Assembly: GCF_001194135.2 (NCBI RefSeq)
Contig: NC_068982.1
Location: 104,405,411-104,460,707 of the forward strand
Direction of reading: 5' to 3'
Source: Octopus bimaculoides
Taxonomy: Eukaryota
Length of the DNA: 55,297 nucleotides
Shown piece after piece: positions 21,938-53,060 of this stretch. Numbering within the stretch: position 1 is the first letter of the stretch; each line of letters starts with the position of its first letter. The notes below the pieces were generated by a model. It was not told the origin of the DNA and did not search any database. It saw only the letters and a list, made by a program, of their open reading frames with translations. Made by a program: the position numbers and the translations under genes.

Positions 21938-21981
<44 letters not shown>

Positions 21982-22004: not shown

Positions 22005-22074
<70 letters not shown>

Positions 22075-22236: not shown

Positions 22237-22269
<33 letters not shown>

Positions 22270-25740: not shown

Positions 25741-25828
25741 ACGAAGTTTGCATGCTGTGCAAACCTCATCCTTATCTTTTTGTAACGAAGTTTGCATACT
25801 GTGCAAACCTCATTCCTATCTCTTTGTA
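25741..25828. repeat. 44-bp tandem duplication, each unit with a GTTTGCA-N5-TGCAAAC hairpin
   Basis: ACGAAGTTTGCAT(G/A)CTGTGCAAACCTCAT at 25741 and 25785. Confidence 0.85.
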
Positions 25829-27230: not shown

Positions 27231-27638
27231 AGGCATGAGCATAGCTGTATGGTTAAGAAGCTCATTTTGCAACCATGTGGTTTTGGGTTCAGTCCCGCTG
27301 CACAGTACCTTGAACAAATGTCTTCTACTATAGCCCAGGGTTAACCAATATATTGTGAGTAAATTTGGTTGACAAAAATCTGTTTTGTGTCTGTGTATGC
27401 ACATGTGTGTGTGTGTGTACACGTGTGTGTTTGTTTTGTATTTGTGTTTGTCCCACCACCACCATTTGACAACCAGTTGGTTTGTTTATGTCCCTATAAA
27501 TGAGTGATTTAGCAAAAGGGACTGAAAGAAGAAGTACAAGATTTGAAAAGAGTACTAATATTGATTTGTCCAACTTAACTCTTCAAGGCTATCCCTTGCA
27601 TGGCTACAGTCCAATGGCTGAAACAAGTAAAAGAAAGA
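27231..27638 (+). mobile_element. SINE family A copy, near full length
   Basis: Head GCTGTATGGTTAAGAAGC..GGGTTCAGTCCCGCTG, internal (TG)n, and tail GCATGGCTACAGTCCAATGGCTGAAACAAGTAAAAG. Confidence 0.78.
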
Positions 27639-28589
27639 TATATGACTTTGTATTATTATTTTTACCATAGGAGATTGAGATGGGTGCTAACCATTGAAGT
27701 TAAACTCCTGAAAGCAAATACTGTTTTGTGTATATTGAAAGAGAATTTTTTGCTGAAAGAACATTTAATTTACAACCTCTCTTCTCAAAAAGTCGTTTGG
27801 GAATGTTTAGAAGGTTATTTCCTTAATAGAACATGATTAAGGAAATCACTTGTATATATGTGAGAGTAAAAGAGATAATAGCACTCATATTAACTATCAC
27901 AGCTATTCATTTTCTAAATGTCAAATGTAATCAAATGATATCTGAAGTCTTAAATCTTTCAAAATAACCAAAGATAAGTAGTAAATAAACTGCTGCAGTA
28001 AATTTATAATCTTTTATGAGAAACTTTACTTTGAAAGGCATTTTATGTAGTGTGAATGGTAGATTAGAGTCACACTAGTTGTGAAAATAAGACCTTCCTA
28101 ATTTATTTTTAAAGTCTCAAAATAACAGTGATAATGCATATACAAATGCATTATCCAATGTGTCCTTCCTTATTTAAAGATGTTAGACTATAATATGAAA
28201 AAGATTTGGGTGTTATTTTTGGTAGGTTGAGTAACCACATAGCGGTTTCATCACCCAAAGTTAATAAAAACAGTGATTGTTCATAACTATTTTCCTTGCC
28301 TTTCAACAGTGCAGTCAGTAGAACAGTAATTGGCAAGGTCAAGAAGATTACCTTTCTTGGGAAGGGGATATACTACTGCATGTTTTCAAAGTTTAGGATA
28401 AGCCCTTATAAAGAGAAAAAAGTAATAAAGTTTTGCAAGAACAAAAGCTATCCCTGCCGCACACAGTTTGAAGGTAACAGAGGGAATACCATTAGAACTG
28501 GTTGCCTCATTGGTCTGAAGGAATTTCTTACACACATATATATATGTGTGTGTGTAATGTGGTGTGTGTGTAATGTGGTGTGTGTGTAA

Positions 28590-28903
28590 NNNNNNNNNNN
28601 NNNNNNNNNNNNNNNNNNNNNNNNNNNNNNNNNNNNNNNNNNNNNNNNNNNNNNNNNNNNNNNNNNNNNNNNNNNNNNNNNNNNNNNNNNNNNNNNNNNN
28701 NNNNNNNNNNNNNNNNNNNNNNNNNNNNNNNNNNNNNNNNNNNNNNNNNNNNNNNNNNNNNNNNNNNNNNNNNNNNNNNNNNNNNNNNNNNNNNNNNNNN
28801 NNNNNNNNNNNNNNNNNNNNNNNNNNNNNNNNNNNNNNNNNNNNNNNNNNNNNNNNNNNNNNNNNNNNNNNNNNNNNNNNNNNNNNNNNNNNNNNNNNNN
28901 NNN
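28590..28903. other. Assembly gap (largest of six)
   Basis: N-runs at 15093-15161, 24464-24577, 28590-28903, 30361-30449, 48131-48185 and 51567-51749, all flanked by simple repeats. Confidence 0.99.
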
Positions 28904-28948
<45 letters not shown>

Positions 28949-29663
28949 GCATACATATAGGTGTGTGTGTATATATACACATATATATATGTAGGTATGT
29001 AAAAAGCACCCATGCCAGACCATATGAAAACACCCATACTAGTTCACGTAAAAAGCACCCAGCACACTCTGTAAAACAGTTGGCATTAGGAAGGGCATCC
29101 AACCATAGAAATCCAGCCAAATCAGACTGAAACCTGGTACAGCTCTCCAGCTTGACAGCTCTCGTCTAGCCGTCCAATTCATGCCCACATGGAAAACGGA
29201 TATCAAATGATGGTAATATATATAATATGTATGTATATAAGTGTTTACCTTTCATTCACTCATGTAAATCAGCAAAGGATATAAACATCAGCAAGAAAAT
29301 TACAAAACCACTACCCTTCAAGTGAAGTTCTTTTGCAATATTTGTTCATCTCGTGTCACGCTTTCCATCAGGTGTATGTAACTAATGATACTATTGTTCA
29401 CTAAATAACCACTCCACTCTCATTACTACCTTTTGAAAAAGTGTGAATATCACAACACACCATTTACTTCTCTCTCCTAAACTGAGGTATCACACTTAAG
29501 AACTAGTTCTATAAGGAAAGAAGCTACTTCATAGGATTACATATAGCACAGCTACCTACTAAACTTGTTGAATTTCAGTTTTTAGATATTTCTGTATGTA
29601 TGGAAGATAGCTAGAGATGGCATACTATCATATAACAGGCTGTCAGTTTCCTTCTTAAATTAT

Positions 29664-29718
<55 letters not shown>

Positions 29719-32126
29719 ATTATCTGCATCTTTTTATTTATTTATTTATTTATTATTTTTTCTATTTCCTTTGGCCAACTCAGCTCAAAATAGATGTTAA
29801 TCTTATTTCATAGCTGAATGGTTAGTAGTAACAAAAGCATCCAGTTGAAAAATACAAATACGAAAAAAAAAAATGCATTTTCTGCAACACATTAAATGCA
29901 AATATTAAAATATACAAAATCCTTCTTACCCTAGTTAAGATAGTTTCTTTATTCCTTTTTAGAAAAAAAAAGAGGGATGTAAAAACTTCTTTTTTTTTTC
30001 ATTTCAAGAATGAAAACATCATTATTTTGTGCAATATTTAGAAAACCAATATTATTCATTTTGTTTATACATACATACACACATACATGCATCCATACAT
30101 ACAAACACACATTCTTTTATTCTTTTATGTGTTTCAGTCCAAAGGCTGTGGCCATACTGGGGCACTGCTAGTGTTATCACTTTTTCAATGGCTATTCTTA
30201 TGCAATTGGCTTTTGGAGAAGGTGGGAGTTCCATATTGCTGCTCTCTTTTCAGTTTCTTGCTGTGATGTAGGTTCATCTGGGGCCTTGGACACCAGGAAG
30301 TCAATTTGTTTCTTGAAAGCATCTACCTTATGTATGTACGTATGTATGTATGTATGTATGNNNNNNNNNNNNNNNNNNNNNNNNNNNNNNNNNNNNNNNN
30401 NNNNNNNNNNNNNNNNNNNNNNNNNNNNNNNNNNNNNNNNNNNNNNNNNGTTTCTTGAAAGCATCTACCTTATGTATGTACGTATGTATGTATGTATGTA
30501 TGTATGTATGTACGTACACACACGTGTGTTTTGTGCAGAAGTAATGAAAATAGAGCACAGAGAGAAGGTAGAAGAATAAACAGATAGTATTATGTTGAGA
30601 CCCAGGAAAATAGAAAAAGAAGGAAATGTCTAATGTTTCAAGTATACACTCTTCTTCTGACAGATAGGATAGAGATGGAAAAGAAAGGAAAAGAAAAATT
30701 TGAAAAATAGATACACACATGTAACCAACCATCATGATGTGGTGAAAAATTGGAAGTAGTTGAGCAGTCGCTTTAGGTGTGAGTGTCAAGGGCTACAACT
30801 GTGACCTGACATGTATGCATGTGTGCTTATTTGCTTGTTTATTTGTATGTGCGTGTGTGTGCTTGTTTGTTTGTGTGTGTGTGAGGCTGTTGTGTGCATT
30901 TATACTGGATAAGCATGTTTATGTGAAAACTGGGGACATTAATGTGTGTTGGGGGTTAGGAAGTGTAGATGTGTCATCATTTTCTGGCTACTATATATAT
31001 ATATGTGTGTGCATATGGATGGCATGTGAAACTAATTGAAGTATATGTGCTAGTGTATGTGCATATTTTTAAGTGTATATGTGGCTTCAATGTGTATGTG
31101 TACTCTGTTTAAATGTTTGTGTGGATGGTGTTGGGTATTTTGCTTATAAGAGTGGTGTAGAGATGTAAGGAATTTTGAATACGGGGACTGTGGGAAAGCA
31201 TGAAATGGGTAGTGTGTATATGAAGTGGTAAAAAAAGTGAAGTTAAACAAACAAGGGGTTGAAAATTAAAACTGTTGGAGATCAAAGTTTAAAAAAGAAA
31301 AAACTAATTCCTGCTCCAGATGGAGACAGAACCCAGGAGGCCTTTATACACTACCAGTTTGAGCACACAGATATTGAAAGGAATGCCAAGCCAAGTGAAG
31401 TGGAGCAAGACTGGAGTTTCATTCCAGAGTCTTTTAACCTATAAGTGTTAAGCAAACATATATACATATATGTATATCATCATCATCATAATTTAGCATC
31501 CATCTTCCATGCTGACATGAGCAGGACAGCTTGACATGATTCAAAATGCTGGAGGACAACATTGAGCTCCAATATCTGTTTTAGCATGGCTTCTGTGGCT
31601 GGATGCCCTTCCCACTGCCAACCACTTTACAGAGTACACTGGGTGGTATTTTTTTCATGATACTAGCATTTGTGAGATTACCAAGTAACTTGTAAGACAT
31701 AGAAAAGATCCGTTGTCTGAGTGGGGTAGTAGTTGAGAGGGAGGTGGCCTTATGCCAGGTTTTGAGAAGCTAAAGTATGATAGAGGGACAGGCATAGGAG
31801 ATACACAGCTACACCACAATATATACAGGTGGAGGGAAGTAGCTAGAAGGAAGATAAAAATGGTTGTGATGAGGTGTCATAAAGTATCAGTGGCATGATG
31901 AACTGTACTCGGTCCACATTGTAAGACATACATAACACCAAAGTCAGACACTCTCTGTTACTGTGTGTGCAAGATGACATAGTCCATGACAATGTCTCCA
32001 ACCTATTCCAGCTTGCAAAAATGGATGAAAGAACTAGAAATTTGTACATTTCTTTTCCACCATGTGATAAAAAAAAATGATATATATATTTGTCTATATT
32101 CTTTTATACTATGTTTTATTTTATAG

Positions 32127-34341: not shown

Positions 34342-34418
34342 GGCTTTCTATTATTGCAAGACTTGCCATGGAGTTGTGACAGATGTTCGAGCAATTAAAA
34401 AATGTCGATGTCGACCAG
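34342..34418 (+). CDS. slo: Slo1/BK exon, end of RCK1 with CxxCH heme motif ([25 protein letters not shown])
   Basis: Acceptor gctgttatAG and donor CAG|GTaggg; 77 nt, phase 2-1. Matches human [26 protein letters not shown]. Confidence 0.96.
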
Positions 34419-35065
34419 GTAGGGATGTTGTTTTAATTTGCATGTGTCATTATTAATTTCAACATTGTACTAGAAATGAAGAGACAAGTTTGTAAGCTGA
34501 AAGGAATTTGAAATATCATTAATTGTTGTGAATCATAAAGTACATGGTGAAGAAGATACAAATGTACAATATTTTATTTTGAGGTTATCAATATGATTTT
34601 GTTTGTTTTGAGGTTTGGTATATAAATATATATACGACATACTTCAGTATAATATATTTTTCATATTTTTTGTTATCAATGTGTTTAAATATCTACTGTA
34701 GACCTCCCACAAGGAGAATGTTTTTAAAACGCATAAGTCTCAACTATAAAAATGTTTCAGTTAATCATTGTTTAAAATGCACTTCCATTTTTGTAATTAA
34801 TATAAAAAGCTATAGTGGTATTTCATCAACCACACTGCATTAGACCTTGATCAAAATAAACTCTCATTGTTTTTATTTAGAGAAATAGAGGGAATTATTA
34901 AGTTGTGATATTCCCATCCCCGTTCACATGTTATGCAGTTAAATAACCAGATTTCTTGAAAGTAGATACTTCATTTAATATTACCATAAAACATGTTTAA
35001 CAGTTACACTTAAGACTACATCTCCAATTATAACACCATATAATTTCTGAGTATTGTAATTGAAT

Positions 35066-35392
35066 AGGCCCATGGCTCAGTGGTTAGAGCATCAGTCTCA
35101 CAATCATGATGCTGTGAGTTTGATTCCCAGACTGGGCTGTATGTTGTATTCTTGAACAAGACATTTTGTCATGGTGCTCCAGTTTACTCAGCTGTAGAAA
35201 TGAGTTGCAACATCATTGGTGCCAAGCCGTATTGAACTTTGCCTTGGATAACATTGGTGACATGGAGATGGGAGGCTGGTATGCATGGGTGATTGCTGGT
35301 CTTTCATAAACAACCTTGCCCAGACTTGTGCCTCAGAGGGGAACTTTGTATGTGCAATCCCATTGTCATTCATAACGAAAAGGGTCTTTACC
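35066..35392 (+). mobile_element. tRNA-derived SINE family C copy
   Basis: TGGCTCAGTGGTTAGAGC A box, GAGTTTGATTCCC B box, then TTCTTGAACAAGACA...TGCTCCAGTTTACTCAGCTGTAGAAATGAG, shared with the 19960 copy. Confidence 0.7.
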
Positions 35393-36939
35393 CATTTTCA
35401 TTATAACTGAAGTGTGCACATTTAAAGATAATTAATGCTTTATTTAGACACATTGTATCCATTAAAGAATGTTACAGTGTCACTTGTTAAACATTAAAAA
35501 GAATAAACTAAAGAATATCCAATTGGAATAAACTCCAGTACCTTTGGTGGATTCAGTACTTTATAGAATCCAAATAGTAGAACCATGTAACTGCTTAAGA
35601 ATCAATGCAACCAATTTTTTTTCTGATATAATACAAAGCAATTGTAAAATAATTTCCATCTTTTTGGCCATTTTATTCACTATTGAAATACCCTTGTGAC
35701 TAAGTTCTTAAAAACTGTTGTTAATCTGAATCTATAAGCTGTCACCATCCCTTTCACCCCAATTTGTTGTTCTTGACCAGTACAATCTGGATTGCAATGG
35801 AATACATTATTTTTTTTTTTTTTTTGACCCTTTTTAAAAAGAAGTCTTGAAAATGTATTAGTAGTGAGAAATATTCTTTGTTTTGTTTGTTTTTGTTTTT
35901 AACTTTTTATGATATCTACCAATATTCTTTCATTTCTTTTGTAATATCATTTCTGCAGCAACACTATCCAATACTGTATGGCACTATTTTCACTTTAGGT
36001 TATAAGAACTGTCTGAGCAAGTTATGCCACTTCTTTACAAACTTCATACATTTCAAACAGTACTGTTTTCTTGAATGTTTTCATAAATTTCTCTAATATT
36101 ATACTACTTCTTTAAGTAAACATTAAATCTTCACTAAATATCTCATTCATTTTCACTGAAACAAAACATACTTTTCTTTTCTTTTTTTTCTTTTGTTACC
36201 AAAATTCATTATTTCCAAACCTTTCGTGTGAAACTATCTACATACAATATGATAATGATAACAAATGCCTCCACTCAATTTTTTCAGTAGAAAATCATGT
36301 AAATTTTACAGTATAAACTCAAACATGTTTTAATAAACTACATAATAAGTTAAGTAAATATTTTAAGTTTATAAAAACACTTTCATATACTGAACTAAAT
36401 AGTTTAACATTTTCATTTTCAAGTAGAATTAAGACTTTTTTGTGTTATGCTTATTGATTCCATGTGTTTTATCTAATATTAAGAAAAATCTTTTTCCTTT
36501 CTTTCTCAAACATTAACAATTTTTATTTGTTGCAAATATGAAAAGTTTTATCATCAAAAACAACAGCTATTTTAGTTCATCTTCTCACCTAATGCTAACT
36601 TATTCCATGGTGCAATAATGGCAGCAGAATACAAAAAACTTACAAATAGGAAGAATTATTCCTAGTGAAAAATATATTGTACTAGCAACGAGACTGAAAT
36701 CTTTCAACTGCATTATCTAGAAATGAATTGTATAAGCCATATCAATGAAAAACCCTAAATATTGAGAGAAAGCAAGAAGCATTTAAATGTTTATCTTCAT
36801 TAATCATATGGCAAATAACAAATTCATATTATCAAATTAAAACAAAAATTAGAGATAATTCAACATGAAATTGTCTATATATTTGGAACTAGTATGCAAT
36901 TTATTATAGATAGTCTAGTTGTATGAACTAGATAACCAG

Positions 36940-37165
36940 ACTTGTGCCAATGAGTAAACCTTTTACATGGTTGCTTATTCTGCTAGAAATAGTAACCAAA
37001 TTGCCAAACATCATTTTCTAGCCTGAAAAAAAAAAGACGAGCGTATTGGACAATGTTGGATAATGTAGACTTAGATATGCAATAAACCAGACTGGTTACT
37101 ACTGGAACATATTTGGCCATAGGTTTGTCTAGTCTGTGATCACCTAAAGCTAAACAACAACAAAA
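36940..37165 (+). mobile_element. Dispersed repeat with (CAA)n tail (SINE-like family D)
   Basis: The 3' end ACTGGAACA..CATAGG...CTAAACAACAACAA is shared with about 570-685(+), 50860-50910(-) and 52200-52300(-). Confidence 0.5.
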
Positions 37166-38443
37166 AATGACCAGTCCTTAATAAGTATATACATATGTAT
37201 ATAATATCATTCATGTTGACCACATTGGTCAACAAAACTGCTGAAACATAAAAATTAGAATTATGCTATTCCTCTCCAGGGACAGAATATATTTCAGTTC
37301 TAGCCTGCTGCTGAATTTATATGAAGCACAAATATCCACTACCCTGGAATATGACTCAAATATATGAATGATGCTCCTTACCATATACACACATATCAGC
37401 CAATGAACAGGCTCTCTATGTGATCACTCAACATGCTTGAAATGGCAGTTAAATATTATTCAAATCACACCCTGCTGACCTACAGAAGATAAAGACAATG
37501 TCATCTTAGATGCCTTGAAACAGTTGGATTGGTCATGGCTTGCATGCCTTTGATTATAGGTCTGCTTAATTGGGGTGACATGGAATTAAATAACAATATA
37601 CACATTCTAGATTGCATACTTCTCTACATGAAAGCTATCTATTTTATAGATAAGACTTCACTCATGAGTGCTCTACAACATCTAACTCCATTATCATTCT
37701 TCTGCAGTTGCAATGCAAAAGTTTCTACTCTGCATATACAATGCCCTTAACTTGACCATCAGAACAGATTACTAGTCCTTTAACTTCATCTATCTCCAAC
37801 CATCACCACAGAAGAGCATTGTTGATACTCAGACTAAGAATTAGAAACATACAAATATATGTCTGCATGGGTGTGTGTGCATACACACCTCACACCTATA
37901 GATAAATATCTATATACATATATATTCATATATAGATACATATAAATAGCACAGTATTCACTTGATAGTAATTATAGAAGACAAAGTAAATTAATCATAA
38001 TGTGTATATCATTGTGACACTGACTAGCTATGTCATAAAATTTAACAACCAGAATAACAAGCAAATCAATAAAATACCATAAACTTCTATGTATAACCCT
38101 TCATCATATTTTATTGCTGCTAGCTATTCATTGCAAATTTATCTTTTCTCAGCTTCTTCTCATACTGTTTCCATTATAACATAACAAAAAAATATTCTTT
38201 TACTTACAGCATGCCTTTTTTTAACATTTCATATATTCAAATGGTGTTTTAAATATCTCATAAATCCATCAGTTTCATTAACTCATCTTCATATATATAT
38301 TTTTTTATTTTCCTATTAATATAGTATAACTTAATTTCCTGATTCTATTAACCAACTGAAGTCCCAGACTTGAACAATTATGGAGTATTGATTAAGATAA
38401 CCATACTTATTATTGTTTTCAAATTTCTTTTTCCCTCTCACAG

Positions 38444-38479
38444 TTGCATTATTCCGAAAAGGAGCATCCGCAGTTCTAG
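38444..38479 (+). CDS. slo: Slo1/BK 36-nt linker mini-exon (V-ALFRKGASAVL), phase 1-1
   Basis: Strong acceptor ttctttttccctctcacAG and donor TAG|GTagag; in frame with no stops. The peptide resembles the recalled invertebrate linker segments (fly LATFRKGVRAV, Aplysia LAMFKKGAAAVL). Confidence 0.85.
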   Translation: MHYSEKEHPQF

Positions 38480-38499
38480 GTAGAGTGTAATATTATCTT

Positions 38500-39040
38500 A
38501 TCTGTCACTGTTAGCAGTCAACTCAGTCAAACTATTTCTCTTAGTGCTAACAACAGACTCTGTTGGGTCATACTTGTTAATGATAGTAAACAGTTTTCAT
38601 TGGGTCATTCCATCTAATGGTAACAACAGATTCTTTTGGGCCATCCCATCAAAAATGTAATAATAGATTCTGTTGGGCCATTCCATATAATGGTAACAAC
38701 AGATTCTTTTGGGTCATCCTATCAAAAATGTAATAATAGACTCTGTTGTTCATTCTACCTAATGATAACAACAGACTCTATAAAGTTATACTCCTGAATG
38801 ATAACTTGGGCCTCTATTCAGCCATTTCAACTGGTGGGAACAATAGACTCTGTTGAACCATTTCTAATGCTCAGAACTGACACTGTGCAGCTGTTTCATC
38901 TAATAATAGCTTCAGTCAGTGTTGAGCGATTTCATATAATGGTAACAACAGGTTCTGTTTGGCCATTCCCCTTAATGGTTAAAAAACAGCCTCTGTTGCA
39001 CCAATCTTCTTCTCATTAGCATTAACAGAATCTGTTCAAC
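38500..39040. repeat. Degenerate minisatellite, ~36-37-bp unit, about 14-15 copies
   Basis: The recurring AACAGA(C/T)TCTGTTGGG(C/T)CATTCCAT core starts at 38554, 38591, 38627, 38664, 38700, 38737, 38772, 38844 and onward. A 73-bp dimer is nearly exact at 38627/38700. Confidence 0.85.
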
Positions 39041-39864
39041 TACTTTCTTTCTTTTTAGCTGCTTCTTTTCTTAACTAAAATAATGACTTCAGATATTTTA
39101 ATTTGGGAAAACTCTTTTATTTTATCTATTTGTTGCTTTAAGTATGGTTCATTTATTGGATTATTGGCACATATATTGATTTTAAGAATATCTAAGCTGG
39201 CTTCTACTCATTGTATTCCTGATAAGGACTCATTTTCGTATGACATTTTTTGTTTTTTTCATGATTCATATAAAAATACTAATACACAACTACAGAAATT
39301 TAACTATTTTTTTGCTTTCATTCTAAACTTATCCATCTATAGATAATTTATTATGAGGAATTCAGTTCTATAAATCTTTGAAGAACAATCTCAGTTTTTC
39401 TCTCTAAGATGTGCCAGTAAAACTTGTAAATGACTTTAGTATTTTTTATATGTCACAAAGTCTGGTCCATTGATATTTGTCGCTGCTGTGCATTATGTAT
39501 TTATTATTGTACTTTTGTTTCTTTTCTAAAGGTGAACTTTTTATTCGCTTTTGGTATTTTCATTTCTGTTATTTGTCTTGTCATTCTATAAATAAGTGTA
39601 TATACAAACATATAAATACAAACATACACACACACACACACACACACACATACATACATACATACATACATACATACATACGATGTATATAATTAGGCCT
39701 TTCTGCACTATTCAGAGTTTCATGTAATAGATGTTTCATCATGATATGTGTATAATGTGAAACTCTAAGTAGCAGTGCAAAAGGCACCAGTCAACTACAT
39801 TAAAAAATAATTCTATAGTATTGAGTACTCTTTCTCTCATTCATGACTGTATATATATAAATAT

Positions 39865-39954
<90 letters not shown>

Positions 39955-40269
39955 AATAGCTTGTTTGTAATCTTATTCACAGTGATATTGTATAAGAACA
40001 TCTTTGTGTGTAAAGACACTGATATGTACACTTGTATTTATAAAAAGAAATCATTCTATATGAATACTATGCACCTTTGACATTCTGCATCACATGTATG
40101 TCTCATGATAACTTGTATTTGTTTGTTTTTTGTTTTGTTTTTCATTGTTTACTTCAAGTTTTTTTTATATATTTATCTTTGATTTATTGTCCCAACTCTT
40201 CCCAAAATGTTCTTGTCTTTTGGGGGGGTTTTTCTCCAAACTTCATGAAAATACCTTACTCTATTTGCA

Positions 40270-41570
40270 TTTAAATCTCATTAAAAACAACTTTATCTTT
40301 CATCCTCTAAGGGAGATTGATAAATTAAGTAGCAGGCAAATGCTGAGGTTGATTCAATAGAAAACACCTTTCCCCCAAATGTATGGCTATGGTGGCCTGT
40401 TTAAGAAATTATTCTAGTGAACAGAATCTGTGGGACAGGGGAAAAAAATGCTTTCCAGTATTTATTCTGGTTCTTTAACTTGTAATTTCAAATTCCATAC
40501 CAGTCACCTTTGCCTTTTATTCTTCTGAGGTTGATCAAATAATATACTAGTCATATGCTAAGATCTATGTAATTAATTGTTCCCCCTTATTATTATTGTT
40601 GTTGTTATTATTATTATTATTATTATTATTGTTATTATTATTATTATTAGTAGTAGTAGTAGTAATAATAATAATAAGGCAGAATCATTAGCACACCAGG
40701 CAAAATGCTTAGTGGTATTTTGTTCATCTTTACGTTCTGAGTTCAAGGTCATCTTTGCCTTTCGTCCTTTCAAGGTTGATAAATCAAGTGTCACTCAAGT
40801 ACTGAGGTCAGTGGGATCGACTTACCTCCTTCCCACAAATTTCAGACTTTGTGCCTATAGTAGAAAGGATTATTATGTTTATTAAAGAGCTGAAGGATTG
40901 GTAGAATCATTAGAGCTTTGAACAAAATACCTTGGGATAATTAGTTCCTGCTCTTTACATTCTGAATTCAAATCCTGCTACAGTCAATTTTGCCTTTCAG
41001 AGTCAATAAAACAGAATGCCAATGAAGTATTGAGGTTGATGTAATTGACTATTTCCCTCACCTATAATTTGATGCTTTTTGCCTTTGGAAGAAATCATTT
41101 TAATCATTAGAGCAATGAGTTGGCTGAATCATTTGTGTCAGAAATAGTACATCACAGTATTTCTTCCTACATTTATGTTCTGAGTTCAATATCTTCTGAA
41201 GTCAGCTTTACCTTTCCTCTTTTTGGGTTTGATGAAATAAAGTATCAGCCAAGTTCTGGGATTGGTGGTATCAGCCAAATCCCTACTTCTGAAATTGCTG
41301 GCCTTATGCCAAAATTTGAAACCATTAATTATTATTATTGTTGTTTTTATTATTATTATTATCATTATTATTAAGGCAGAAGCTGGCAGAATTGTTAGTG
41401 CACAGAACAAAATACTTAGCTGTAATTTGTCTGTCTTACATCCTGAGTTCAAACTCTGCAAAGGTTTCAGGGTTTATTAAATGAGTATCAGCTGAGCACT
41501 GGAATCAATGTTATCAGCTAGCTCCTCCAAGGAAATCTCAGGCCTTGTCACTATAATACAAAGGATTTTA
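40270..41570 (+). mobile_element. Head-to-tail array of about six diverged SINE family B copies with (ATT)n spacers
   Basis: Copies at about 40270-40400, 40410-40590, 40676-40870, 40885-41100, 41107-41325 and 41372-41570. Confidence 0.75.
40588..40676. repeat. (ATT)n/(GTT)n/(AGT)n/(AAT)n compound trinucleotide repeat
   Basis: Direct inspection. It explains the poly-Ile/Ser/Asn ORFs at 40573-40885. Confidence 0.95.
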
Positions 41571-41936
41571 TTATTACATTTTCCAATTTTTTTTTTGTAA
41601 CCATTTAATATATTGTTACTTTTTCCCTACACATAAGGTAAGTAATGTTTCATTTATAATTCACCTTTGATTTTATTTATTGATCATTGCATTAATTCAT
41701 TCTTTGCTAAAATTAAATATATGCAAAATATGTCCCTATACATGCTTTTCTGATTTTTTTTTTTTTTTCAGTACATATTTTAAATATCAGTGTTTATTTC
41801 TACAGGCTGTTACTACTCTAGCTATGAAAAATATTCTTTTTCGTTGTTTATTATTCATACAGTTGTTTTTGCTCCCCTTTCTTTCTTTCTGTCTCTCAAA
41901 ATTTTTGAGATAATTCATCTTTATTTCTTTTTACAG

Positions 41937-41942
41937 CATCGG
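41937..41942 (+). CDS. slo: Candidate 6-nt microexon CATCGG adding Ala-Ser to the RCK1-RCK2 linker, phase 1-1
   Basis: Long pyrimidine tract ending tttatttctttttacAG, then CATCGG, then GTaaga. Frame-preserving. Three TGCATG motifs lie downstream (42128, 42428, 42468). There is no transcript evidence. Confidence 0.55.
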
Positions 41943-42149
41943 GTAAGAAAATACAGCACTTTGTAACTATTATGGTTAGATGGCAGTAATATGCCACACA
42001 CATCTTGTGCTTTATTTAATGCATTTAAATCATTGTAGTTATTGTTGTTGTGGTTTCAACCATTGTATCTTTTGATTTTTAATAGTTAGTAAAGCCATGC
42101 TAGTAGTTGATTGGTATACCCTTTGTTTGCATGAATTGGATTTACCCTT

Positions 42150-42199
<50 letters not shown>

Positions 42200-42899
42200 A
42201 TATATATGTTTATATATTTGAGTTTTTTTCTCAGTTAATGTTTTATGGCTGTTGTAAGTTGAATAAATGATATCATCCCAGTTTATATTAGATATAACAA
42301 ACCTTTGCCAGACACTGTACACACTCTAACCCAATGGTATATTGAGCACTTTTATGCTTTGTTCCACAAAATATAGAAGATATATTACTCACTGTATTTA
42401 GTCTTGTATATGCTGTACCCTATACTTTGCATGGAAAAGCTGATCCAAATTTGTTATTATCTAATTCTGCATGGAAGATGAGACTAGAAGGGTCAGGGAG
42501 CTTTTCAAAATTGTATAACATGTGTACCGTTCTTAGTAGAGTTAAACAATTAAATTTTTAACACATTGATTATAGAATAACCACATCATGCATAATACAT
42601 AACCAAAAATTATATTATGATATCAAAGAAAACCATTAAAGCAAATTTAATAAGTCATCAATTAACGTTCAAGGTTAAGCTCAATTATGAAACCATCAAT
42701 CAATAACAAAATATTATTAATTACAACTTTAAGAAATCAATGTTAAAATCAATTTAAAAGTCAAAGTTAAATGTTTCCTCATCACTGATGCTAAAAACGA
42801 CCTCCTATTTCTTGTATCAAATGTTTGTCTGCATCCTATGATGTTATTAATTCATCCATCTTCTTATGTTTTGGTTGTGTTGGTCATTAACTCGCAAAT

Positions 42900-43030
42900 A
42901 GTAATCTTCAGAAGCCCTCTATTTTCAAGAAGCTCTAAATTACTATCTCATTAGAAATATCATTCTATGCATTCTTCACCCATTATTTTATAAGGGACAC
43001 ACTTGGTTTCTTGAAGTTGCCATTTTTGGT
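42900..43030 (-). mobile_element. Fossil pogo/Tigger-like (DDE_1) transposase C-terminal fragment
   Basis: The minus frame reads TKNGNFKKPSVSLIK*WVKNA*NDISNEIVI*SFLK, matching the T..GN.K.PS....W...AW..I....I..SF.K pattern. Three stops. Confidence 0.55.
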
Positions 43031-43316
43031 CAGTTTCTTTTAGTATGAAGACATTCAGGTCATCTGCATCTGACACATTCTATCCTTCAATAACTTATTC
43101 AGCACCACATCCTTCAGATGACAGTGAGGCAATCCAAGGTTGTGGTAGAAGACATCCAAGGTGTTGCACAGTGGGATGAAGCCTCAGACCACATGAGTGT
43201 GAGATGAACTTATCATTTGGCAATGCTTGTAACATTACATGTATGTCTAAACTTAGCTAAGCACTTACGCATTCAAACATACATGTACACACATATGCAC
43301 TCATACATATACGCAC

Positions 43317-43625
43317 AGGCTCTTCTTGATATATAGAAAAGGTGTAGGTAGAAACTCCATAAGATGTACCCGGTGCAAGCTATGGACACATAAGAGGTGC
43401 AGCAATATCAGAGGAAAGTTAACAGGGAAAATGGTCTCTGTGTGTGGCAGATGCACAGGTATAATAAACACTAGAAATATACAGAAAATAGATTCTACCA
43501 GATGCCAAGTGGGATATCTAGAAGATGATGATTGCTTTCATTATCTAGGTGACCAAGTCAGCAGTAGTGGTAGATGCCCTGAGAGTGTAGCTGCTAGAGT
43601 AAGAATAGGTTGGGCAAAGTTCAGT
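43317..43625 (+). mobile_element. RTE-clade LINE ORF fragment (Cys-rich zinc-binding insert after RT)
   Basis: RKGVGRNSIRCTRCKLWTHKRCSNIRGKL...CGRC...F.YLGDQVSSSGRCPESVAARVRIGWAKF is typical of RTE/BovB-like ORFs. It is homologous to the VHKKCSGIK remnant at about 33200. Confidence 0.8.
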
Positions 43626-45624
43626 GTGCATGTATGACAGAGTGTAAGCATCTTAAGAGAAAAAAATGGGTATAAGGGGCATCAGATGTGGTATGTAAGA
43701 GAGATGACTGTGCTGATATGGCCATGTGATGTGTATTTACTTTGTTATATTGTTTAGTACATCAAAAGAATTGACATTGTTAATCAATTCATGTGTTACT
43801 TTTTCATTAACTTAATTCCTTTTGATTAAAGTGCTCTGGTTAATTAATATAGAATAATAGAAATTTAGCTTTAATTAACAGAGATCCAACTAATTATTCT
43901 GGGGAAAATATCTTAAGGAAAAACACAGAGAATAGTGAAGATCTCTGCAAAACTTTGGAGGAAAGGGAGGGCAAAAGGAGAGGAAAGAAAAGGAGGGGGA
44001 ATAATTGGTATATAGAGATAGCTATAATCACAGCAATCATAACCTATAAATGCTTAAATAGAAAAAAAATAGGGTAAATCTAATGGAGAAAGTAAGCAAC
44101 ACTGTTGGCAGAAGATGGTGTTGACATAACAAACAAATAAATGTGTATACTAGACTAATGAAAGTAGTTTAGGCTATAATCAGTGTCAACATAAAGGATA
44201 TAAATATTGTAAAGATACCACCTAAGGTTAAGAGCAAACTATAAAATTAGTTCATTATAAAATATATAAAATTACAATCATTGGTGTATGCCATTAGAAC
44301 TAAAGGTACACAAAAGTAGCTTAAATATGATCAGTTATTAGTATTAGCAGTATTAAGCTATGCTAGGCTACCTAAATATAATCTATGACTCTTATTACTA
44401 GTAATTAAGGTCTGTATTGTAAGTTATAGATATGTATCTAGACTCAGAGAAGACTTTATAGAATTGGCTTAAAGTATAAGAAAGTTCTATGGATAGAATG
44501 TAAACATTTGATCCTTAATTCATCTGATCTATTAACAGTTTAAGATTTCTGACAATTCCTAACAGCAAAGATTGCAATCATATCTATCACTTACATAAGG
44601 CTTAACATGTCTAGCAACATTTCACATTAGAGGGTACTCAATATTTTTGTCCTTTAACTCCCAGACTTTCACAGAGAGCAATATTGTTTCCACTTTATCT
44701 CTCCTTGTAAATGTGTGATTATAAATCTTGATTTAAAATTAGAGGAAATGGATCCTACATAAGTGAAAGTCTATAGATTAGTTTTACCATTACATTTATA
44801 CACAAGGTTTTGATCAGGTATTTATTTCCTAGCATTTCTTCTAAAAATTGCATAATCTAGTTAATGTCAGGATGGAAATATTGTGGGTTACATAACTCAT
44901 ACTACTACGCAGTACACAGCTATAATCAGTAGAGTGTGCAGTAGCCACTCCATCAACACTTACATTACCATGATTTGTACTGTTGCTTTGTATATATGCA
45001 TATATACGCAAAAATATATGTATGCATACATCATATCAAAAGCAAGTAATATAAGCGAAACTCCGTTGGGTTTGACAATGAATATTTACAGTTGTTCAAT
45101 CAACTGAACTTACCAAAGTACTCAATATTCACCTATACATGGAACATAGTATATAATTTTAGGGTTCTGTAGAAACTTCTATTTGATGGCTTTACATTGT
45201 ATCTAGGAATCTGGACACCACAATCTTCATCAGACTTTTGAAATAGATCCAGATATAAAAGATAAGTTTGCTTTTCCTACAAACCATAAAACCATGGTGC
45301 AGGAAAAACCAAATGCACTAAATATATATACATATGTATGTGCATACACTTGTATGTATAAGCACATGCATTATTTATGACTAGGCCTATCTGTTTCAAA
45401 AGTAATAAAACTTGTCTTTGTGTTACCATAATTAATGTAATAATTATAAACTATATAAGTTTTAATTACATGCTTTGCTGTTTCATTTGTAGATTAGATT
45501 AGAAATACATAGTTTAACTATTAACATTCTAGATTGCAAATTTTGGTGTTGATGTTGTTTAGTTGGTTTTATTTGTTATAGATTTTTAATACCAAAATTC
45601 CCTATGGAATATTCAACAATGAGG

Positions 45625-45684
<60 letters not shown>

Positions 45685-46189
45685 AAACTTACTTGGAAGA
45701 GGATGCATAGCATTCAATCATATAATAATATAAATAATATATATATATGCATATATACATATGTATATGTACATACTTACATCTATACGTGTGTATATAT
45801 ATATATACATACATATATATTTTTTACTTCAGTTACCGACCCATTTTCTCTTTTGCTACTTTTATTATCAGCTGTTATTAGAGTAACATAGATTGGCTGC
45901 TGAAGTGAAGATATTAGAAAAGTTTCAAGTTAATAGACAATATTATGAAGGGTGGTACTAAAAATGATGAAGATGATAATAATGCTATAGTTATGTTGGT
46001 TGTAATATAGTTTGAATTATCTTCAGTATTTAGAATGATGAATGTTATATTTCTTGTGAGACAACTGCAAGAATCAAATCAAACAAACAAGATAATTGTG
46101 TATTTGTTGACCTATAAAAACCTATGATGATGTCCCACACTCTTTAGTGTGATAATTAAAAAGAAATCTAGGTATGTATGAATGGTAAA

Positions 46190-46470
46190 TGACAAATATT
46201 TATGTTATTAATGGTAAGACAAAGAGTCAGGGTTATTGTAATCTCAGACATATAGAGGAATGCATGGTGTGTCATAACCAGTTTTCTTTTGTCCATTCTA
46301 TTCTATGAAACAGTTACAAATCAAATACCATTAAGAACTTTTTTATGTTAATGATTTGGTTCTTGTTGCAAAATATTTTGAAGAACCACGGAAACCAGAA
46401 GCTTTGAAGAGTAAGCTTCATTAAATGAATTGAAGATAAATGTGGCTATCATAAGTTAGAATTAGAAACT
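46190..46470 (+). mobile_element. Highly decayed reverse-transcriptase fossil (RTE-like)
   Basis: Remnant frames YVNDLVLVAK (cf. YADDLVLIAE) and ELKINV (cf. GLKVNV). Very diverged. Confidence 0.35.
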
Positions 46471-49400
46471 ACACCTTCAAAATCAAGAAGAAGCCTTGTT
46501 CACTATGAAAGGAAAGAAAATCATGGAATTAAATACTATGAGGTTTGTGGAACAATTGTATCAGCAAAAATAAAGAAAGGTGCAATGAGATCTCTGGTAG
46601 ATTGACTGAAAGCTGAATTTTAAGTGTAACACATGAGGCAGAATGGCTTAGAATATAAGAAATCATGACTTTAAACCAGAAATTTTTCAGATGGCACATA
46701 GATGTTGTTGGCAGAATTAGTGATAGCATAATTACTAGGAGGTTGGAATTAATGATTTTATAGTGACTATGATGTAGATAGGAGATAATTTTATAGACGT
46801 GATATTGCAAAAAAAATAATGATATATTTTTACCATGCAAAAACCAGATTATTTAGCTAATGTTTAAGAAGTGTTATCCTGTAATTTTAGCAAAACATGA
46901 GCAATGAAAGAGAAATTGGACTTTGTCTATAAGATGATTCTTGCTAAATTAATGATAAAGACTATACAAGTATTCAAGAAAGCATTAAGGAACATATAAC
47001 AAAAGAATATTGAATATGCTAGGTAAAAAGTGCTGTGAGTTTGTGATAACAGGTTCTTATGTTAAAGATAAAATAAGGAATTCCTAGGAAGAATTAGTTC
47101 AGAATTCACAATATTTAGCTTCAGAATTGGAAAGGGAATGACATAGATACATAAAAAGAAACTTCATTGCAATCCAGTGACGATGATTAGTTTCTCTACT
47201 GACATATATTAGAAATTCCTCAAACAAATAAATAAGTTGTATAATAGTGTTTACTTAAGTGTAATTTTGTTGGAAACTCCTATTTAACTTGCCAATTAAT
47301 CAATATAGCTTTTCACATCAGTGACTATGGAAATGTTTCTAAACACACTTAAGTGTTAATAGCAGGAGATACCAGCTTCTCAGTCAAGTAGAATATATTA
47401 TGCTCGATTTGGCATAGGATGACTTGTCTATTCATTCACAACCACGTGGTGAAATTATAAACACACAAGGAAAAACAATCTGGCTGGAAAGGAATTTATT
47501 TTCAACAATGTATCCTTAATGAATGTTCTAATAGTTGTCAATGCTACTGTTTTAGCTGCTACACTATTATTGGTATGTCATGGTCTGAAAAATTTGCCTC
47601 ATTTTATAAACTAGGGTGAGCACAAACATTATTTACTCTTGTGCATATGAAAACGGAGTGAGTAGTGGTGATCCTAAAGGTTTTCAGATTTTACAGATTT
47701 ATCTTTAGGTGTGCGGATAATAATCAGTTGAGGTTACAGAGTCACTGCAGGAAATACACTTTCTTGTTCTGAATACAAATTCACACACACACACACACGC
47801 ATGTAATTTTCAGCATATGAGTATTTGAAGGAAAGGGTTAAAAAAAAAGAAGCTACATCTATTTGTGATGGATGAGTGAATGTAATTTGAGTCCAGGTAT
47901 GGATTTTGTTATGAAGTCACAATAGGGATAATTATGGTTTGGATTCTGCCTGGGATTGTGTTTGTTGATCACAGGATATAATTCTTTTATTGTTTTGCTT
48001 CCTAACTCAAATTGTTTAACTGCATTATGACACATTTTATACCACTCAGATCAATCTAGGCAATAACTTTCCCAAGATGTTGAATAAAGCTGTAGGGATT
48101 GTCTCAACTTATCTTTATATATATATATATNNNNNNNNNNNNNNNNNNNNNNNNNNNNNNNNNNNNNNNNNNNNNNNNNNNNNNNTATATATATAATCAT
48201 AGTTTTGTGGCCAGTTTCTGTGATGCATGAGTTGGACAGATCTTATCTCCTAGGCAAGCTAGGGAACCATATCCCATTCCAAGTTCCGGTTTTGAGCTTT
48301 GTTTCCATGGCTGGATGTTTTTCTTAGCACCAACCATTTTACAGAATCGACTGGGTGTATTATATGATGGCACCAACTCTAAAAAATGTTTCATAGTTTT
48401 GACAAGACTAAATGTCTTGACCTGCTTAATAGAATGTATTAAGTGCCTTTTATTGTGGCACGAGCACTTGAGAGAATTGCTATGTCTTTGAGAACACTCA
48501 GTGGTACTCTTGATTCCCATGTCTCTGCTCCTTCTCATTCTCACTTTACAGAGTGTCCTAGCTGGAATTTTGGTGGCACTAACACAAGTGGGGTTGCCAA
48601 TTACCATGTAAGAATAGAGAGTCCTCATCACTGGAATGCACTTGTTCACTCAGGACGACTATGTAGCTAATGAGCTGAATAGAAGAGAACAACAATGATA
48701 GAAGAACCAGCGTAGGTGGAAAAGAGGAGCAAGAGTGTGATAGTAAAAGTAACATCTTTCCTTCACTGCATTTACCTACTGCCCTTTACTCTCTGCTTCA
48801 TTTTCCTTCTACTGCCTCTCCCCACAGCTTCCCCTCCTCCAACATCTCTTCCAATCATTCTTCCTCACAACTCCCACATCTCTCCTTTGATTACTTTCTC
48901 AAGATTCCTGTCTACCTTAATCTATTTCTCCTTTTTCTCCAACTTTCTGTCCATACTCACTTCTTATGATGTTGGATAACCCTAAATCTCCACACACATC
49001 CCACTCATTCACCTTTCAACTCTAACCTCCCCCTTTTTCTCAACCCCTGTTCCTACTCCCTTTTTTTCCTGTTCCTTGTCAACTCCTCCCCATCTTTTCA
49101 TCTTATAATCTCTTATTCCTCTACTTAGAATCATTGCTAACTCTTAGTTGTATGGGCCATTTTTCCGTCCTTAGTCTTGTAAGTTACAAGGCAATCTTCA
49201 GTAGCACTGGTGTCATAAGAAAAAAAGACACCCATTACATTCTGAAAAGTAGTTATCATCAGGAAAGGCATCCACCCATAGAAATTATGTCAAAGTAAAC
49301 ATTGGTACATGACACAGTCCTCCAGTTCACCAGATCCACTCAAACTCTCCAACCCATACCAGCATGGAAGCCAGATGTTAAATGATGCTGATGTATGTAG

Positions 49401-51824
49401 TTGGAATGCTTGTAGCTGTAACCTGTATGATATAGTGTCTGCATGGATGACAGGGTGAAAACTATCCTATAGTCTGAGTCAAAAGAACCTGGACATTCCT
49501 TCATAGCATCAGTGTTCCTCATCACTTTTGTGTGTAGAAGACAACAGCAGCTGTAGTGTTCATCAGTTTTATGTAATGTGTTTACATTACTGATTCAGTA
49601 TGTTTTTTTGTTAGCCAATCTCAGATAAGTTACAACAGTGTTTATGTTAGTCAACATAAACTGTGTAGGATGATAACACGTTTGTTAGCTATATTAACAA
49701 ACATCAATTCTACAAATCATTTAACATGTGCGATAAGTTGTTTTAGTAACACGTGTTTTTAGAAAACTGACCCCAATACAGCTGTTCATATTTCATATCT
49801 AAGTAATATTAAATGGCTTTATGTATTATTATCATGAATACAAGATTGTAAGTGGAGACATGTGTGAGCAATATGCTTAAATTCAAGAGATTGGTAAGCC
49901 TAATAACAGAATAGCTTCTAGTTATACTAATTGAATATAAAATTACAAAGAAGAGTTTTTAACAAGAGAAACAAGTGACTGCCTTTCTGACTGGTTGACT
50001 AAACAAATGTTTGAATTTATAGGAACAATTGTCTATTTGATAGAGGTATGACAAAATTTGCAGCATAGTAGTAGAAAAGTAAGATGAAAGCTTGGAGTTA
50101 AGTTAAAACTTATATTTGAAGCTGAGATCAAATACGACTCATATTGCTTTCTTTACATATTCATCTCTTCCCCTTCTATTAATTTGAAGGAGTAGCTAAC
50201 TAGATTTCTTAATAGCATTGAAGGTGTGAAATAATTTCAGTCTTGCTATAACTTTAGTTCAAAATAATCTCTTGCTAACAATACAAACTCAGTTTCTTAT
50301 ATAAATATTTTACTTTTAAAAATATTGTGTTCCCTATCAATACATATATTAATGTATTATAAGTGACTAAAGTATTGGACTACTGACCTGTTTGTTATAT
50401 TTTCTACCTCAGATATTTCAATGTCTTCCTGCGGCATTTTTTTTTTTTTTCAATTCTGAAAGCCTTGCTTCATCTAACCCTAGAAATAAATAGCAGAGCT
50501 TATGACAGTGTTATTTATCATACACAAAATAATTTATGTGCTAAGAAATTAAAACTATTAAAAAAGTTTCTACACCTCTTTAGCAACTGGAAACGTCATG
50601 TCACCTCCTGCTACTCTGTTAATAATTTTGATTGAATCATATATTTATGTGTTTTTTTTTTTGGTGGTGGGGGGTTATTGTAAAAATGTCATGATAGAAT
50701 TCAATACATAAGCTTTGTCCTGATTAAAAAGAAATTATGAGTGTAATAGAGAATCATGGGTTATTTTTGAAGGCAACATAATCATATCTAGCTGGTGGAT
50801 TGATACTGAATATTCACTTTGAGAAGAATTCTCTTAAAAATAACCAATGTGTCAACATTCAGATGTGTTGTTGGTTAGGGCCATATTAGCCTGATCGAGC
50901 AACCCTATGATCAATGTGTGTGTTTTAGTTTTCTGGAGATTTAATGCAGACAGAATACTCTTATATGCAACAATGTTATAATTAAAACATTCTAACCATT
51001 TATAACAACATATTCTAGTTAAAAATTACTATAGAAACACAACTAAATACTAAATTCTTAATGAAGCTATAAGTTTCTAAATGTGATATCAAGCTTGTTC
51101 ACCATACATACGCATAAGCATATGACCAACATGCATCATATATGATTTAGAAGCTTATAATTTGGAATTTAGGATTACATAAGTAATTAGCAGTTATTTG
51201 TCAGTTTCTATCAATGTAGTAACAACAACAATTTCTGACCAATTTACATATAAAAGGGGATTTGTTTGTATGATAGTGTATAGAGTAATGTATTATTCAA
51301 AAGACTTCCAACTCTGTCTGTTTGAAACACTTCTGTCACACAGGACCTTGAAGATTGCTAGAAAGCAGGAAAGTATACTAGTCCATAAATATTTAATATT
51401 CAATATTTCATTTATTCAATAAGACATTCAATACTTCATTTCATTTTAATATATATACTATATATTCCATATTCTATATCCCACATTAATTTTATAAGAA
51501 TATAAATAAAACATAAAAAACAGACAGAGTTGGAATTCTTTTGAATAATATATATATATATATATANNNNNNNNNNNNNNNNNNNNNNNNNNNNNNNNNN
51601 NNNNNNNNNNNNNNNNNNNNNNNNNNNNNNNNNNNNNNNNNNNNNNNNNNNNNNNNNNNNNNNNNNNNNNNNNNNNNNNNNNNNNNNNNNNNNNNNNNNN
51701 NNNNNNNNNNNNNNNNNNNNNNNNNNNNNNNNNNNNNNNNNNNNNNNNNATATATATATGTATGTATATGTATGTATGTATATGTATGTATGTATATGTA
51801 TGTATGTATATGTATGTATATATG

Positions 51825-51856
<32 letters not shown>

Positions 51857-53060
51857 TGAGGCTGGATGTATGTTGACTTCAGTTATGGAGCTGTATTCCT
51901 AGTTACATTATTGTATGTGCACATATACACACACACATACACACATTTATGCTCCTCATTTTCATTTGAGTAACAAACTACACAGGACCCCCTCAGATGA
52001 ACTTATCCAAAGCCAACTCAATGATTATTTAAAAAAACTTTTTTCAGTTGTAATCTACCACTAAATGCATAATACATATTTAAACAATGGTTATACACAA
52101 AGAAATTCCAGTAATGTACTCAGTTTGAATCTAGTGTCTCATGAAATTTTCATTTTAGAATTCAGGAATTATCTTCCAAATAACTATTGTGTCTGCTTCC
52201 AGATTTGTTCCTGTTTAAGCCCAGCTTGGCTCTGATCAGATATGCTTCTGATCAAAGTTGTTCCATTTTGAAAGGTTGGGTATAACATGTCTAGGACTAT
52301 ATTATTTACTGTGATCTTTTTGTTATGATAGTTGAGCTTGAGTGATTCAAATAAAATTGAATGTGGATCTCATCAGTTAATAGTAGAAGCCACAAACATC
52401 AATAAATTTGTAAAAGAAGCCTTGTTCAGCATGCAAGAAACGTCAAAGACTAAGGTTTTAACAAAATAATGGTATCGGTAACAAATATGAAAATATTATA
52501 ATTTTAGACAGAAATTATTAAAAATTGGAGAAAATTAATCTTTGGTTTAATAAAAGCCAGATAAAATAAAAACCATGTGCTTCAGAGAGGAATTATATTC
52601 AGTATGAAGAAAACCATGTATTATCTACCTCCTGTTTTTATCATGTGTAATTTTTTTATGCCTCTGCTTTGATGGTATGTTATGTTCTCATCTAAACTTC
52701 CTTGTTACTCTTTCCCTTCAGCATTACAAAGAAGGTCTGAATTGGTACACACAGACAACCAAATAGGTATTCAAATAGATTTATCACTGCCACTACACAT
52801 CTCAATCATTCTTTCTCTCTTCTATGTCTCTTTCTCTCTCCCACTGTGTGTAATTTCACTCTCTCTGTGCCTCACTTCTGCTTTTCTGGCCTTCACTTGC
52901 TCAACTTCACTGTATATTTTGAGGACATTTACAGAGACCTACACATGTGGGTATATATATATAAATAAAATACACATGCATATACTTTTATGTATACATT
53001 ATATATTCATGAATTATATATGTGTATATATTATATATATGTATGCATATTTTGAGTGTA

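Follow-up and report, generated by a model that had tools for sequence, protein, structure and literature searches.

The diversity of BK channels arises largely from splicing of the linker between RCK1 and RCK2. In vertebrate KCNMA1, STREX and IYF are frame-neutral cassettes that change channel regulation, STREX being about 58 residues long and cysteine-rich, and they are inserted directly after ...KKCGCKR (sequences P0074 and P0072). A comparison of linker sequences places this junction at the 3' end of the CxxCH exon, which is also where cassette exons occur in arthropods and nematodes. In Aplysia californica Slo1 (PDB 5TJ6/5TJI) the stretch ...CRPLAMFKKGAAAVLALQRTPGLAVEPDGE... stands directly after the CxxCH exon; the linker exon LATFRKGVRAVQMVGR of Drosophila slowpoke and other arthropods (isoform J, PDB 7PXE) occupies the same junction and carries an F-R-K-G...A-V-x-x-V/L-x-R motif; and the nematode SLO-1 linker LSLFRKGGKQVQLVKR has the same motif at the same junction in a more divergent sequence. 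Short optional segments have been reported in the linker region of filarial SLO-1 (PMC4270693), and in the structure of the fly channel the linker residues C631-E777 are disordered (PMC8660915). The FRKG motif aligns to about fly residues 649-660, inside this disordered linker. Here we describe the corresponding junction in a 55,297-nucleotide (nt) stretch of Octopus bimaculoides DNA (contig NC_068982.1, positions 104,405,411 to 104,460,707 of the forward strand; hereafter the window), in which the RCK1 half of a BK/Slo1 gene of the mollusc type is found.

A preliminary description of this DNA proposed that the intron region after the CxxCH exon contains three overlooked microexons of 36, 6 and 21 nt, combined freely into up to eight linker variants, and that no conserved exon can be recognized beyond them before the window ends. 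Our analysis points to a different arrangement, which we consider probable as a whole: two frame-neutral exons of 36 and 45 nt open the BK linker (Table 1). The linker would start after the CxxCH exon and run through at least these two short phase 1-1 exons, the second 14.2 kb beyond the first, with the product RP-VALFRKGASAVL-ALQRRSELVHTDNQI; further short symmetric linker exons would lie beyond the window. Each of the two exons is a multiple of three in length and is in phase 1 at both ends, so either could be skipped without a frameshift. They are presumably alternative rather than constitutive in this species, and their inclusion may tune channel gating or regulation.

Candidate exons at the start of the linker

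The window has 33% G+C and six assembly gaps. A tblastn search with a generic BK query, taken as a lead only, located seven RCK1-side exons on the + strand (near positions 1194, 4875, 13684, 15483, 20553, 32095, and 34340) and found no RCK2 exon downstream of the CxxCH exon in the window. The RCK1 exons lie in order, with the CxxCH (heme-motif) exon last, as belongs to BK/Slo1 (KCNMA1/slowpoke), and Pfam families PF22614 and PF03493 are present in database matches to them. When exon F, the CxxCH exon, and the proposed linker were compared as one fragment with solved structures, Aplysia Slo1 (PDB 5TJ6) was matched with E = 1.3e-44, and Drosophila isoform J (7PXE) and human BK structures were matched as well. 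The exon map and this structure match bear out the earlier identification of a BK/Slo1 gene whose CxxCH exon ends in phase 1.

Splice sites were scored with a simple, generic vertebrate-style donor/acceptor position weight matrix (PWM) of our own making. On this scale the real exons of the gene score 2.6-11.3 at their acceptors and from below 0 to 7.6 at their donors, and two of them (exons E and F) use GTATTT donors. Stop-free, phase 1-1 segments of 3-60 nt between AG and GT are abundant on both strands (610 on the + strand of the window tail, 534 on the opposite strand), so this property carries no weight in what follows.

The 36-nt exon follows a long pyrimidine tract and a CAG acceptor (...ccctctcacag/TTGCATTATTCCGAAAAGGAGCATCCGCAGTTCTAG/gtagag, with slashes at the splice junctions). 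Its acceptor score of 11.3 is the highest in the window; its donor, TAG/GTAGAG, is weak (-0.3). The Aplysia Slo1 protein sequence, derived from complementary DNA (cDNA), contains LAMFKKGAAAVL, which aligns to the product of this exon, within a longer stretch that reads ...KKCKCRPLAMFKKGAAAVLALQRTPGLAVEPDGEANDKDKSRG. Further loci were fetched from public assemblies around single-exon open reading frames (ORFs) of the exon that precedes the CxxCH exon: L001 and L002 are Aplysia-like gastropods, L003-L005 are other mollusc-like loci, and L009 is a short contig found via its CxxCH exon. All six of these lophotrochozoan loci have a 36-nt, phase 1-1, AG...TAG/GT exon after the CxxCH exon, and length, phase, and TAG/GT end are thus the same in seven loci, the window included. 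The products in the six loci read LAMFKKGAAAVL, LAMFRKGATAVL, LALFKKGATAVI, or LAQFKKGVTAVI; together with VALFRKGASAVL of the window and LATFRKGVRAVQ of arthropods they share the pattern x-[AS]-x-F-[RK]-K-G-x-x-A-[VI]-x, by which we recognize the protostome FRKG linker exon. Arthropod and nematode BK proteins carry LATFRKGVRAVQMVGR, VAPFRKGVRALQLVGQ, LSLFRKGGKQVQLVKR, and similar sequences at the same junction, directly after KKCKCKN. The FRKG exon is seen in mature mRNA for Aplysia and Drosophila only, via their cDNA-derived PDB sequences. Homology of this kind, far beyond chance, marks the 36-nt segment as a genuine and anciently conserved exon, the orthologue of the exon known in Aplysia Slo1 and Drosophila isoform J. 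It is no overlooked novelty, as it already stands in the Aplysia and isoform J sequences.

Two features were observed next to this exon. A tandem repeat at 38548-38779 (37/73-nt period, 2.5-6 copies, 69-87% matches) starts 69 nt past the donor and has a partial extra copy at 38929-38969. Reading through the donor at 38476-38488 gives ...AVL-GR-V-stop, in which GR resembles the arthropod ...VQMVGR end; this likeness is probably a coincidence.

The 45-nt exon emerged when possible phase 1-1 exons of the window tail were listed, and it lies outside the range covered by the preliminary description. Its context is ctttcccttcag/CATTACAAAGAAGG...AAATAG/gtattc (in full, ctttcccttcag/CATTACAAAGAAGGTCTGAATTGGTACACACAGACAACCAAATAG/gtattc); its acceptor scores 8.8, among the six best on the strand, and its GTATTC donor resembles the GTATTT donors of exons E and F. 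In the two gastropod loci L001 and L002, the exon after the 36-nt one reads ALQRTPGLTIESDG..., that is, (A)LQRTPGLTIESDG...; it has 51 or 54 nt, is phase 1-1, and lies 2.2-2.35 kb downstream. Its product, ALQRTPGL..., agrees with the Aplysia protein. The segment in the window likewise stands after the 36-nt exon, is phase 1-1, and starts with (A)LQR; similarity past ALQR is weak. Joined, the two exons give VALFRKGASAVL-ALQR and restore a 16-residue motif that reads LATFRKGVRAVQ-MVGR in arthropods; the first 16 residues are the window version of the protostome motif [LV]-[AS]-x-F-[RK]-K-G-x-x-A-[VI]-[QL]-x-[VL]-x-R.

How often such a match arises by chance was gauged with two patterns. The relaxed pattern [AVGDE][LIVM]x[RK], placed at acceptors scoring at least 2, matches at 52722 and nowhere else in the 16.8-kb tail, and on the gastropod loci it finds the true exons plus one false match. 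The exact pattern AG/(A)LQR occurs four times in 336 kb, both strands counted, and three of the four are members of this ALQR exon family; the empirical background is about one chance case per 330 kb, or about 0.05 expected in the tail. Taken together, these sequence comparisons make it very probable that the 45-nt segment is the true next exon after the 36-nt exon, and likely that it is the orthologue of the gastropod/Aplysia ALQRTPGL exon; with this match, the earlier statement that no conserved exon is recognizable before the window ends does not hold. The product of the 45-nt exon also contains an RRS tripeptide, speculatively a basophilic-kinase site.

Table 1. Features of the linker region (window positions unless a locus is named; slashes mark splice junctions)
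Feature	Position	Strand	Description
CxxCH exon	34342..34418	+	77 nt; phase 1 end CCA G/gtaggg; donor score 7.2
36-nt exon	38444..38479	+	phase 1-1, stop-free; encodes VALFRKGASAVL = (V)ALFRKGASAVL; AG/GT ends
Juxtaposed 3'/5' splice-site-like motif	41626..41645	+	tttttccctacacataag/GTAAGTAA; 300 nt upstream of the 6-nt candidate
Candidate 6-nt microexon (putative)	41937..41942	+	CATCGG; would insert Ala-Ser; phase 1-1
Assembly gap	48131..48185	.	(TA)n on both edges: ...tatatatatatat[N55]tatatatataatc
21-nt segment (rejected as exon)	50413..50433	+	DISMSSC
Second assembly gap	51567..51749	.	between 21-nt segment and 45-nt exon; adjoins TATG/TA microsatellite
45-nt exon (predicted)	52722..52766	+	phase 1-1; product ALQRRSELVHTDNQI, (A)LQRRSELVHTDNQI; outside the range of the preliminary description
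UGC-bearing region upstream of 36-nt exon	L001 13866-13909		
UGC-bearing region upstream of 36-nt exon	L002 11937-11980		
UGC-bearing region upstream of 36-nt exon	L003 11837-11880		
UGC-bearing region upstream of 36-nt exon	L004 15353-15396		
UGC-bearing region upstream of 36-nt exon	L009 1497-1541		

Alternative readings of the intron

The candidate 6-nt microexon (...ttatttctttttacag/CATCGG/gtaagaaa, with tttttacag on the acceptor side) is the only place in 38480-50412 able to give Ala-Ser between AG and GT. With an acceptor of 6.9 and a donor of 5.8 it is unique: on neither strand of the window do any other AG and GT 1-60 nt from each other both score at least 5. From the densities of sites, about 0.02 pairs of this strength would be expected per 12 kb and 0.09 per strand, and 200 Markov-simulated 55-kb sequences gave 0.045 pairs with both scores at least 5 and none as strong as this one. 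The segment belongs to no dispersed repeat family within the window. The usual limit for microexons is 27 nt or less; the 36- and 45-nt exons exceed this length for neural microexons, and the putative 6-nt candidate alone is short enough. Two complete orthologous gastropod introns contain no 6-nt equivalent, and no phase 1-1 segment of up to 60 nt with an acceptor of at least 3 and a donor of at least 2 was found in these two introns or in about 20 kb downstream in four other loci. In the Aplysia cDNA, AVL is joined directly to ALQR with no Ala-Ser between. Upstream of the 6-nt acceptor, no UGC was seen within about 70 nt when the sequence was read by eye, and a UCUC-rich tract is also absent.

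A second splice-like site lies nearby, where AAG is followed immediately by GTAAGTAA (41637/8). Its donor half, at 7.6, matches the highest-scoring real donor of the window, and its acceptor half is weak (0.5) because it is AAG; base composition predicts about one AGGTAAGT for each 55-kb strand. A recursive splice site consists of a polypyrimidine tract and an AG directly followed by GTRAGT, in a long intron.

The 21-nt segment, DISMSSC, was rejected as an exon. In its context, ...ttttctacctcag/ATATTTCAATGTCTTCCTGCG/gcattttttttt, the acceptor cctcag/ is present (3.4), and what follows the segment is GC and T14 instead of GT (pseudo-donor, -1.4); read-through gives ...CGIFFFFQF and reaches a TGA codon ahead of the first GT. 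Neither tblastn of linker sequences against the tail nor DNA comparison with the mollusc loci revealed any similarity of the segment to protein or DNA, and it is no better than chance, that is, ordinary intron.

These observations bear on three accounts of the 6-nt segment. It would be either a microexon peculiar to this lineage or a pair of strong splice sites that is cryptic or due to coincidence, and we lean towards its not being a regular coding exon. We moderately favor the account in which the 6-nt site, perhaps together with the AG/GTAAGTAA of 41637/8, acts in splicing as a non-coding element (cryptic, decoy, or stepwise recursive-type) or is a coincidence. The intron is long (38480-52721), Ala-Ser has no coding homology, and the near-perfect AG/GTAAGT 300 nt upstream suggests that non-coding splicing elements may exist in this part of the 14-kb intron; however, a true recursive site needs GT right after AG, whereas 6 nt intervene here, the acceptor side at 41638 is weak, and one AGGTAAGT per strand is about what chance provides. 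A genuine microexon specific to cephalopods or octopus, placing Ala-Ser between AVL and ALQR in an extra isoform, is conceivable but on balance unlikely. In its favor, the pair is unmatched in the window and in the simulations, it is phase 1-1 and outside the dispersed repeats, and the lack of any comparable pair in about 25 kb of mollusc intron, even at the lower thresholds, indicates that the paired-site criterion rarely fires by chance. Against this stand the lack of a homologue in the Aplysia cDNA and the two gastropod introns, the missing UGC motif and UCUC-rich tract of eMIC-dependent microexons (PMC8797185), the interruption it would cause in a motif whose conservation reaches from nematodes to molluscs, the generic, vertebrate-style PWM, and the fact that many kilobases had already been scanned for exactly such pairs when the site was first noticed. 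The original proposal of three combinatorial microexons, RP-(VALFRKGASAVL)-(AS)-(DISMSSC), has very little left to recommend it. All three segments lie where they were described, join in phase 1 as RP-VALFRKGASAVL-AS-DISMSSC without a stop, and have AG acceptors; the 36-nt segment is real by homology, the 6-nt segment has strong paired signals and no other support, and both have donor-like flanks as claimed. The 21-nt segment, by contrast, has an acceptor but no GT donor, reads into a stop, and has no homologue, and the model omits the conserved continuation after AVL, the ALQR... exon at 52722. With the 21-nt segment failing, the 6-nt segment standing on its signals, and the ALQR exon left out, the eight-variant switchboard is not supported as drawn, although the general idea of small frame-neutral exons at the BK splicing hot spot has proved sound, the linker being built from short phase 1-1 exons.

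Several points weigh against the model of a 36-nt and a 45-nt exon. Inclusion of both exons in this species would follow from homology and splice signals only. The signals of the 6-nt candidate are statistically unusual, so treating that segment as non-coding may be wrong. Beyond ALQR, the 45-nt exon has no more in common with the gastropod exon than one Leu and an Asp whose placement is loose, its donor scores -2.3 on the vertebrate-style PWM, and no ALQR-type exon was found in L003-L005, where 5-8 kb are available downstream, so that the ALQR exon is confirmed only in gastropods and in this window. The last three of these points could also be read as signs that the 45-nt segment is a chance match, about 5 of its 15 residues agreeing with the gastropod exon, and that the real next exon lies past the window or in one of the two gaps that break the intron. 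We regard this as improbable, since an exact ALQR at an AG is rarely expected in a tail of this length, the acceptor is in the top six and has the right strand, order, and phase, the size, 45 nt, is near the 51-54 nt of the exon in gastropods, the donor type is used elsewhere in the gene, and the join with the 36-nt exon rebuilds the conserved 16-residue motif.

Other features of the intron

The model with exons of 36 and 45 nt leaves a long intron between them, and the rest of its content was surveyed for further exons and elements. The first assembly gap of Table 1 falls in the intron sequence that separates the 6-nt candidate from the 21-nt one. As the splice sites of each candidate are its own, no reading frame runs across the gap; most likely it hides only more TA repeat, a hidden exon being formally possible. 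Tandem repeats are present at 51750-51873, beside the second gap. When the tail was searched by tblastn with 52 linker sequences from invertebrates and vertebrates, only low-complexity noise came back. One match in such searches, LQRFQGL at 41447-41485, looks like the ALQR exon and was rejected, as it sits in a dispersed repeat. This SINE (short interspersed element)-like repeat spans window positions 41370-41580 and has copies near 10747-10917, 17829-17926, 18095-18132, 18866-18928, and 40899-40978; a strong cryptic acceptor, ctttgcctttcatcctttcag/GG, was seen near several of the SINE-like copies (18353, 18872, 40775).

A second 36-nt, phase 1-1, stop-free AG/GT segment, ECPSWNFGGTNT, occurs at 48552-48587 (+), with an acceptor of 7.6 and a donor of 3.7. 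It lacks a homologue, and the long ORFs that it overlaps on both strands (minus, 48197-48649; plus, 48443-48670) point to repeat or transposable-element sequence. An intronic ORF at 43326-43637 (+) encodes 103 residues with a CxxC...H..C zinc-finger pattern, for which the Pfam PHD/C1 matches are sub-threshold only; it is probably a transposable-element remnant. Matches between the candidate regions and the mollusc loci at the DNA level were limited to simple repeats, Rfam recognized no RNA family in 34000-55297, and ARAGORN found no tRNA in the window.

Upstream of the linker, the intron between RCK1 exons E and F (window positions 20712-32126, 11.4 kb) contains assembly gaps at 24464-24577, 28590-28903, and 30361-30449. 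Alternative RCK1 exons occur in other taxa in the part of the gene that matches this intron.

Comparison with described BK linkers

Word-indexed protein searches, including one with an alignment of seven mollusc-type linker peptides, returned no cephalopod BK sequence, and neither did a HMMER search of cluster representatives, whose best matches were single-exon ORFs of a gastropod-like kind. Exact database look-up of two window ORFs gave no record, and in a literature search no paper turned up that deals with BK splicing in cephalopods or with cephalopod microexons in the BK gene. The closest described linker is that of Aplysia Slo1, in which 8 of 12 residues are identical to the product of the 36-nt exon and ALQR comes next, as in the window. 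The genomes of gastropods related to Aplysia have separate 36-nt and 51/54-nt phase 1-1 exons, the same layout as proposed here. Past ALQR the sequences have diverged (RSELVHTDNQI in the window versus TPGLAVEPDGE in Aplysia), and the two exons are separated by 14.2 kb of intron in the window and by 2.2-2.35 kb in the gastropod loci.

The splice signals of the 36-nt exon differ as well. In five of the six other loci, UGC lies 12-15 nt upstream of a weak AAG/UAG acceptor, in several of them with a CUAAC branch-point-like motif; the gastropod acceptors are of this kind (AAG with UGC upstream). The window, unlike these loci, has a strong CAG acceptor; UGC is missing from the 45 nt before it, and a CUCUC tract is present. 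A conserved weak TAG/GT donor combined with UGC upstream, often with CUAAC nearby, fits regulated inclusion. With the neuronal Srrm234/SRRM4 eMIC programme the linker exons have in common that they are short and symmetric and belong to a neuronal ion-channel gene, and eMIC-dependent microexons have UGC near the 3' splice site and a UCUC-rich tract (PMC8797185). The UGC at -12 to -15 in the five loci fits this published cis-code, whereas neither the 36-nt nor the 6-nt site of the window has it.

In arthropods, the linker behaves in a cassette-like manner, as protein and gene-model sequences include or omit the LATFRKGVRAVQMVGR exon; among insects, sequences with the FRKG exon (P0049, P0018) stand against sequences without it (P0117, P0058, P0059), and the neighboring exons are present or absent as well. 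In these insect sequences the 16-residue motif is either there as a whole or missing as a whole, as would be expected of a single cassette exon; in molluscs and in the window, in contrast, the motif is split by an intron after residue 12. No counterpart of the neighboring arthropod cassettes (YVGMIMMQTGMVK... and others) was found in the window tail by tblastn. The vertebrate STREX and IYF inserts share the junction and have no sequence similarity to the window exons, and when the P0074 linker was compared with the tail by tblastn, no STREX-type match was present among the 60 best-scoring matches listed.

The junction that bears STREX in vertebrates thus carries, across protostomes, a conserved basic motif, FRKG...AV.x.R, which in molluscs is spread over two small frame-neutral exons. 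What this analysis would add is a corrected exon map of the locus, with exons of 36 and 45 nt about 14 kb apart. If the 6-nt exon were real, it would be the only part adding something new: an Ala-Ser insert exactly at the motif-splitting intron would be an extra lineage switch on BK regulation, beyond the skippable 36- and 45-nt exons. Otherwise, the biology suggested here is an expected extension of that described for the fly, worm, and Aplysia BK genes, with what appears to be a mollusc-specific split of the motif into exons of 36 and about 50 nt.

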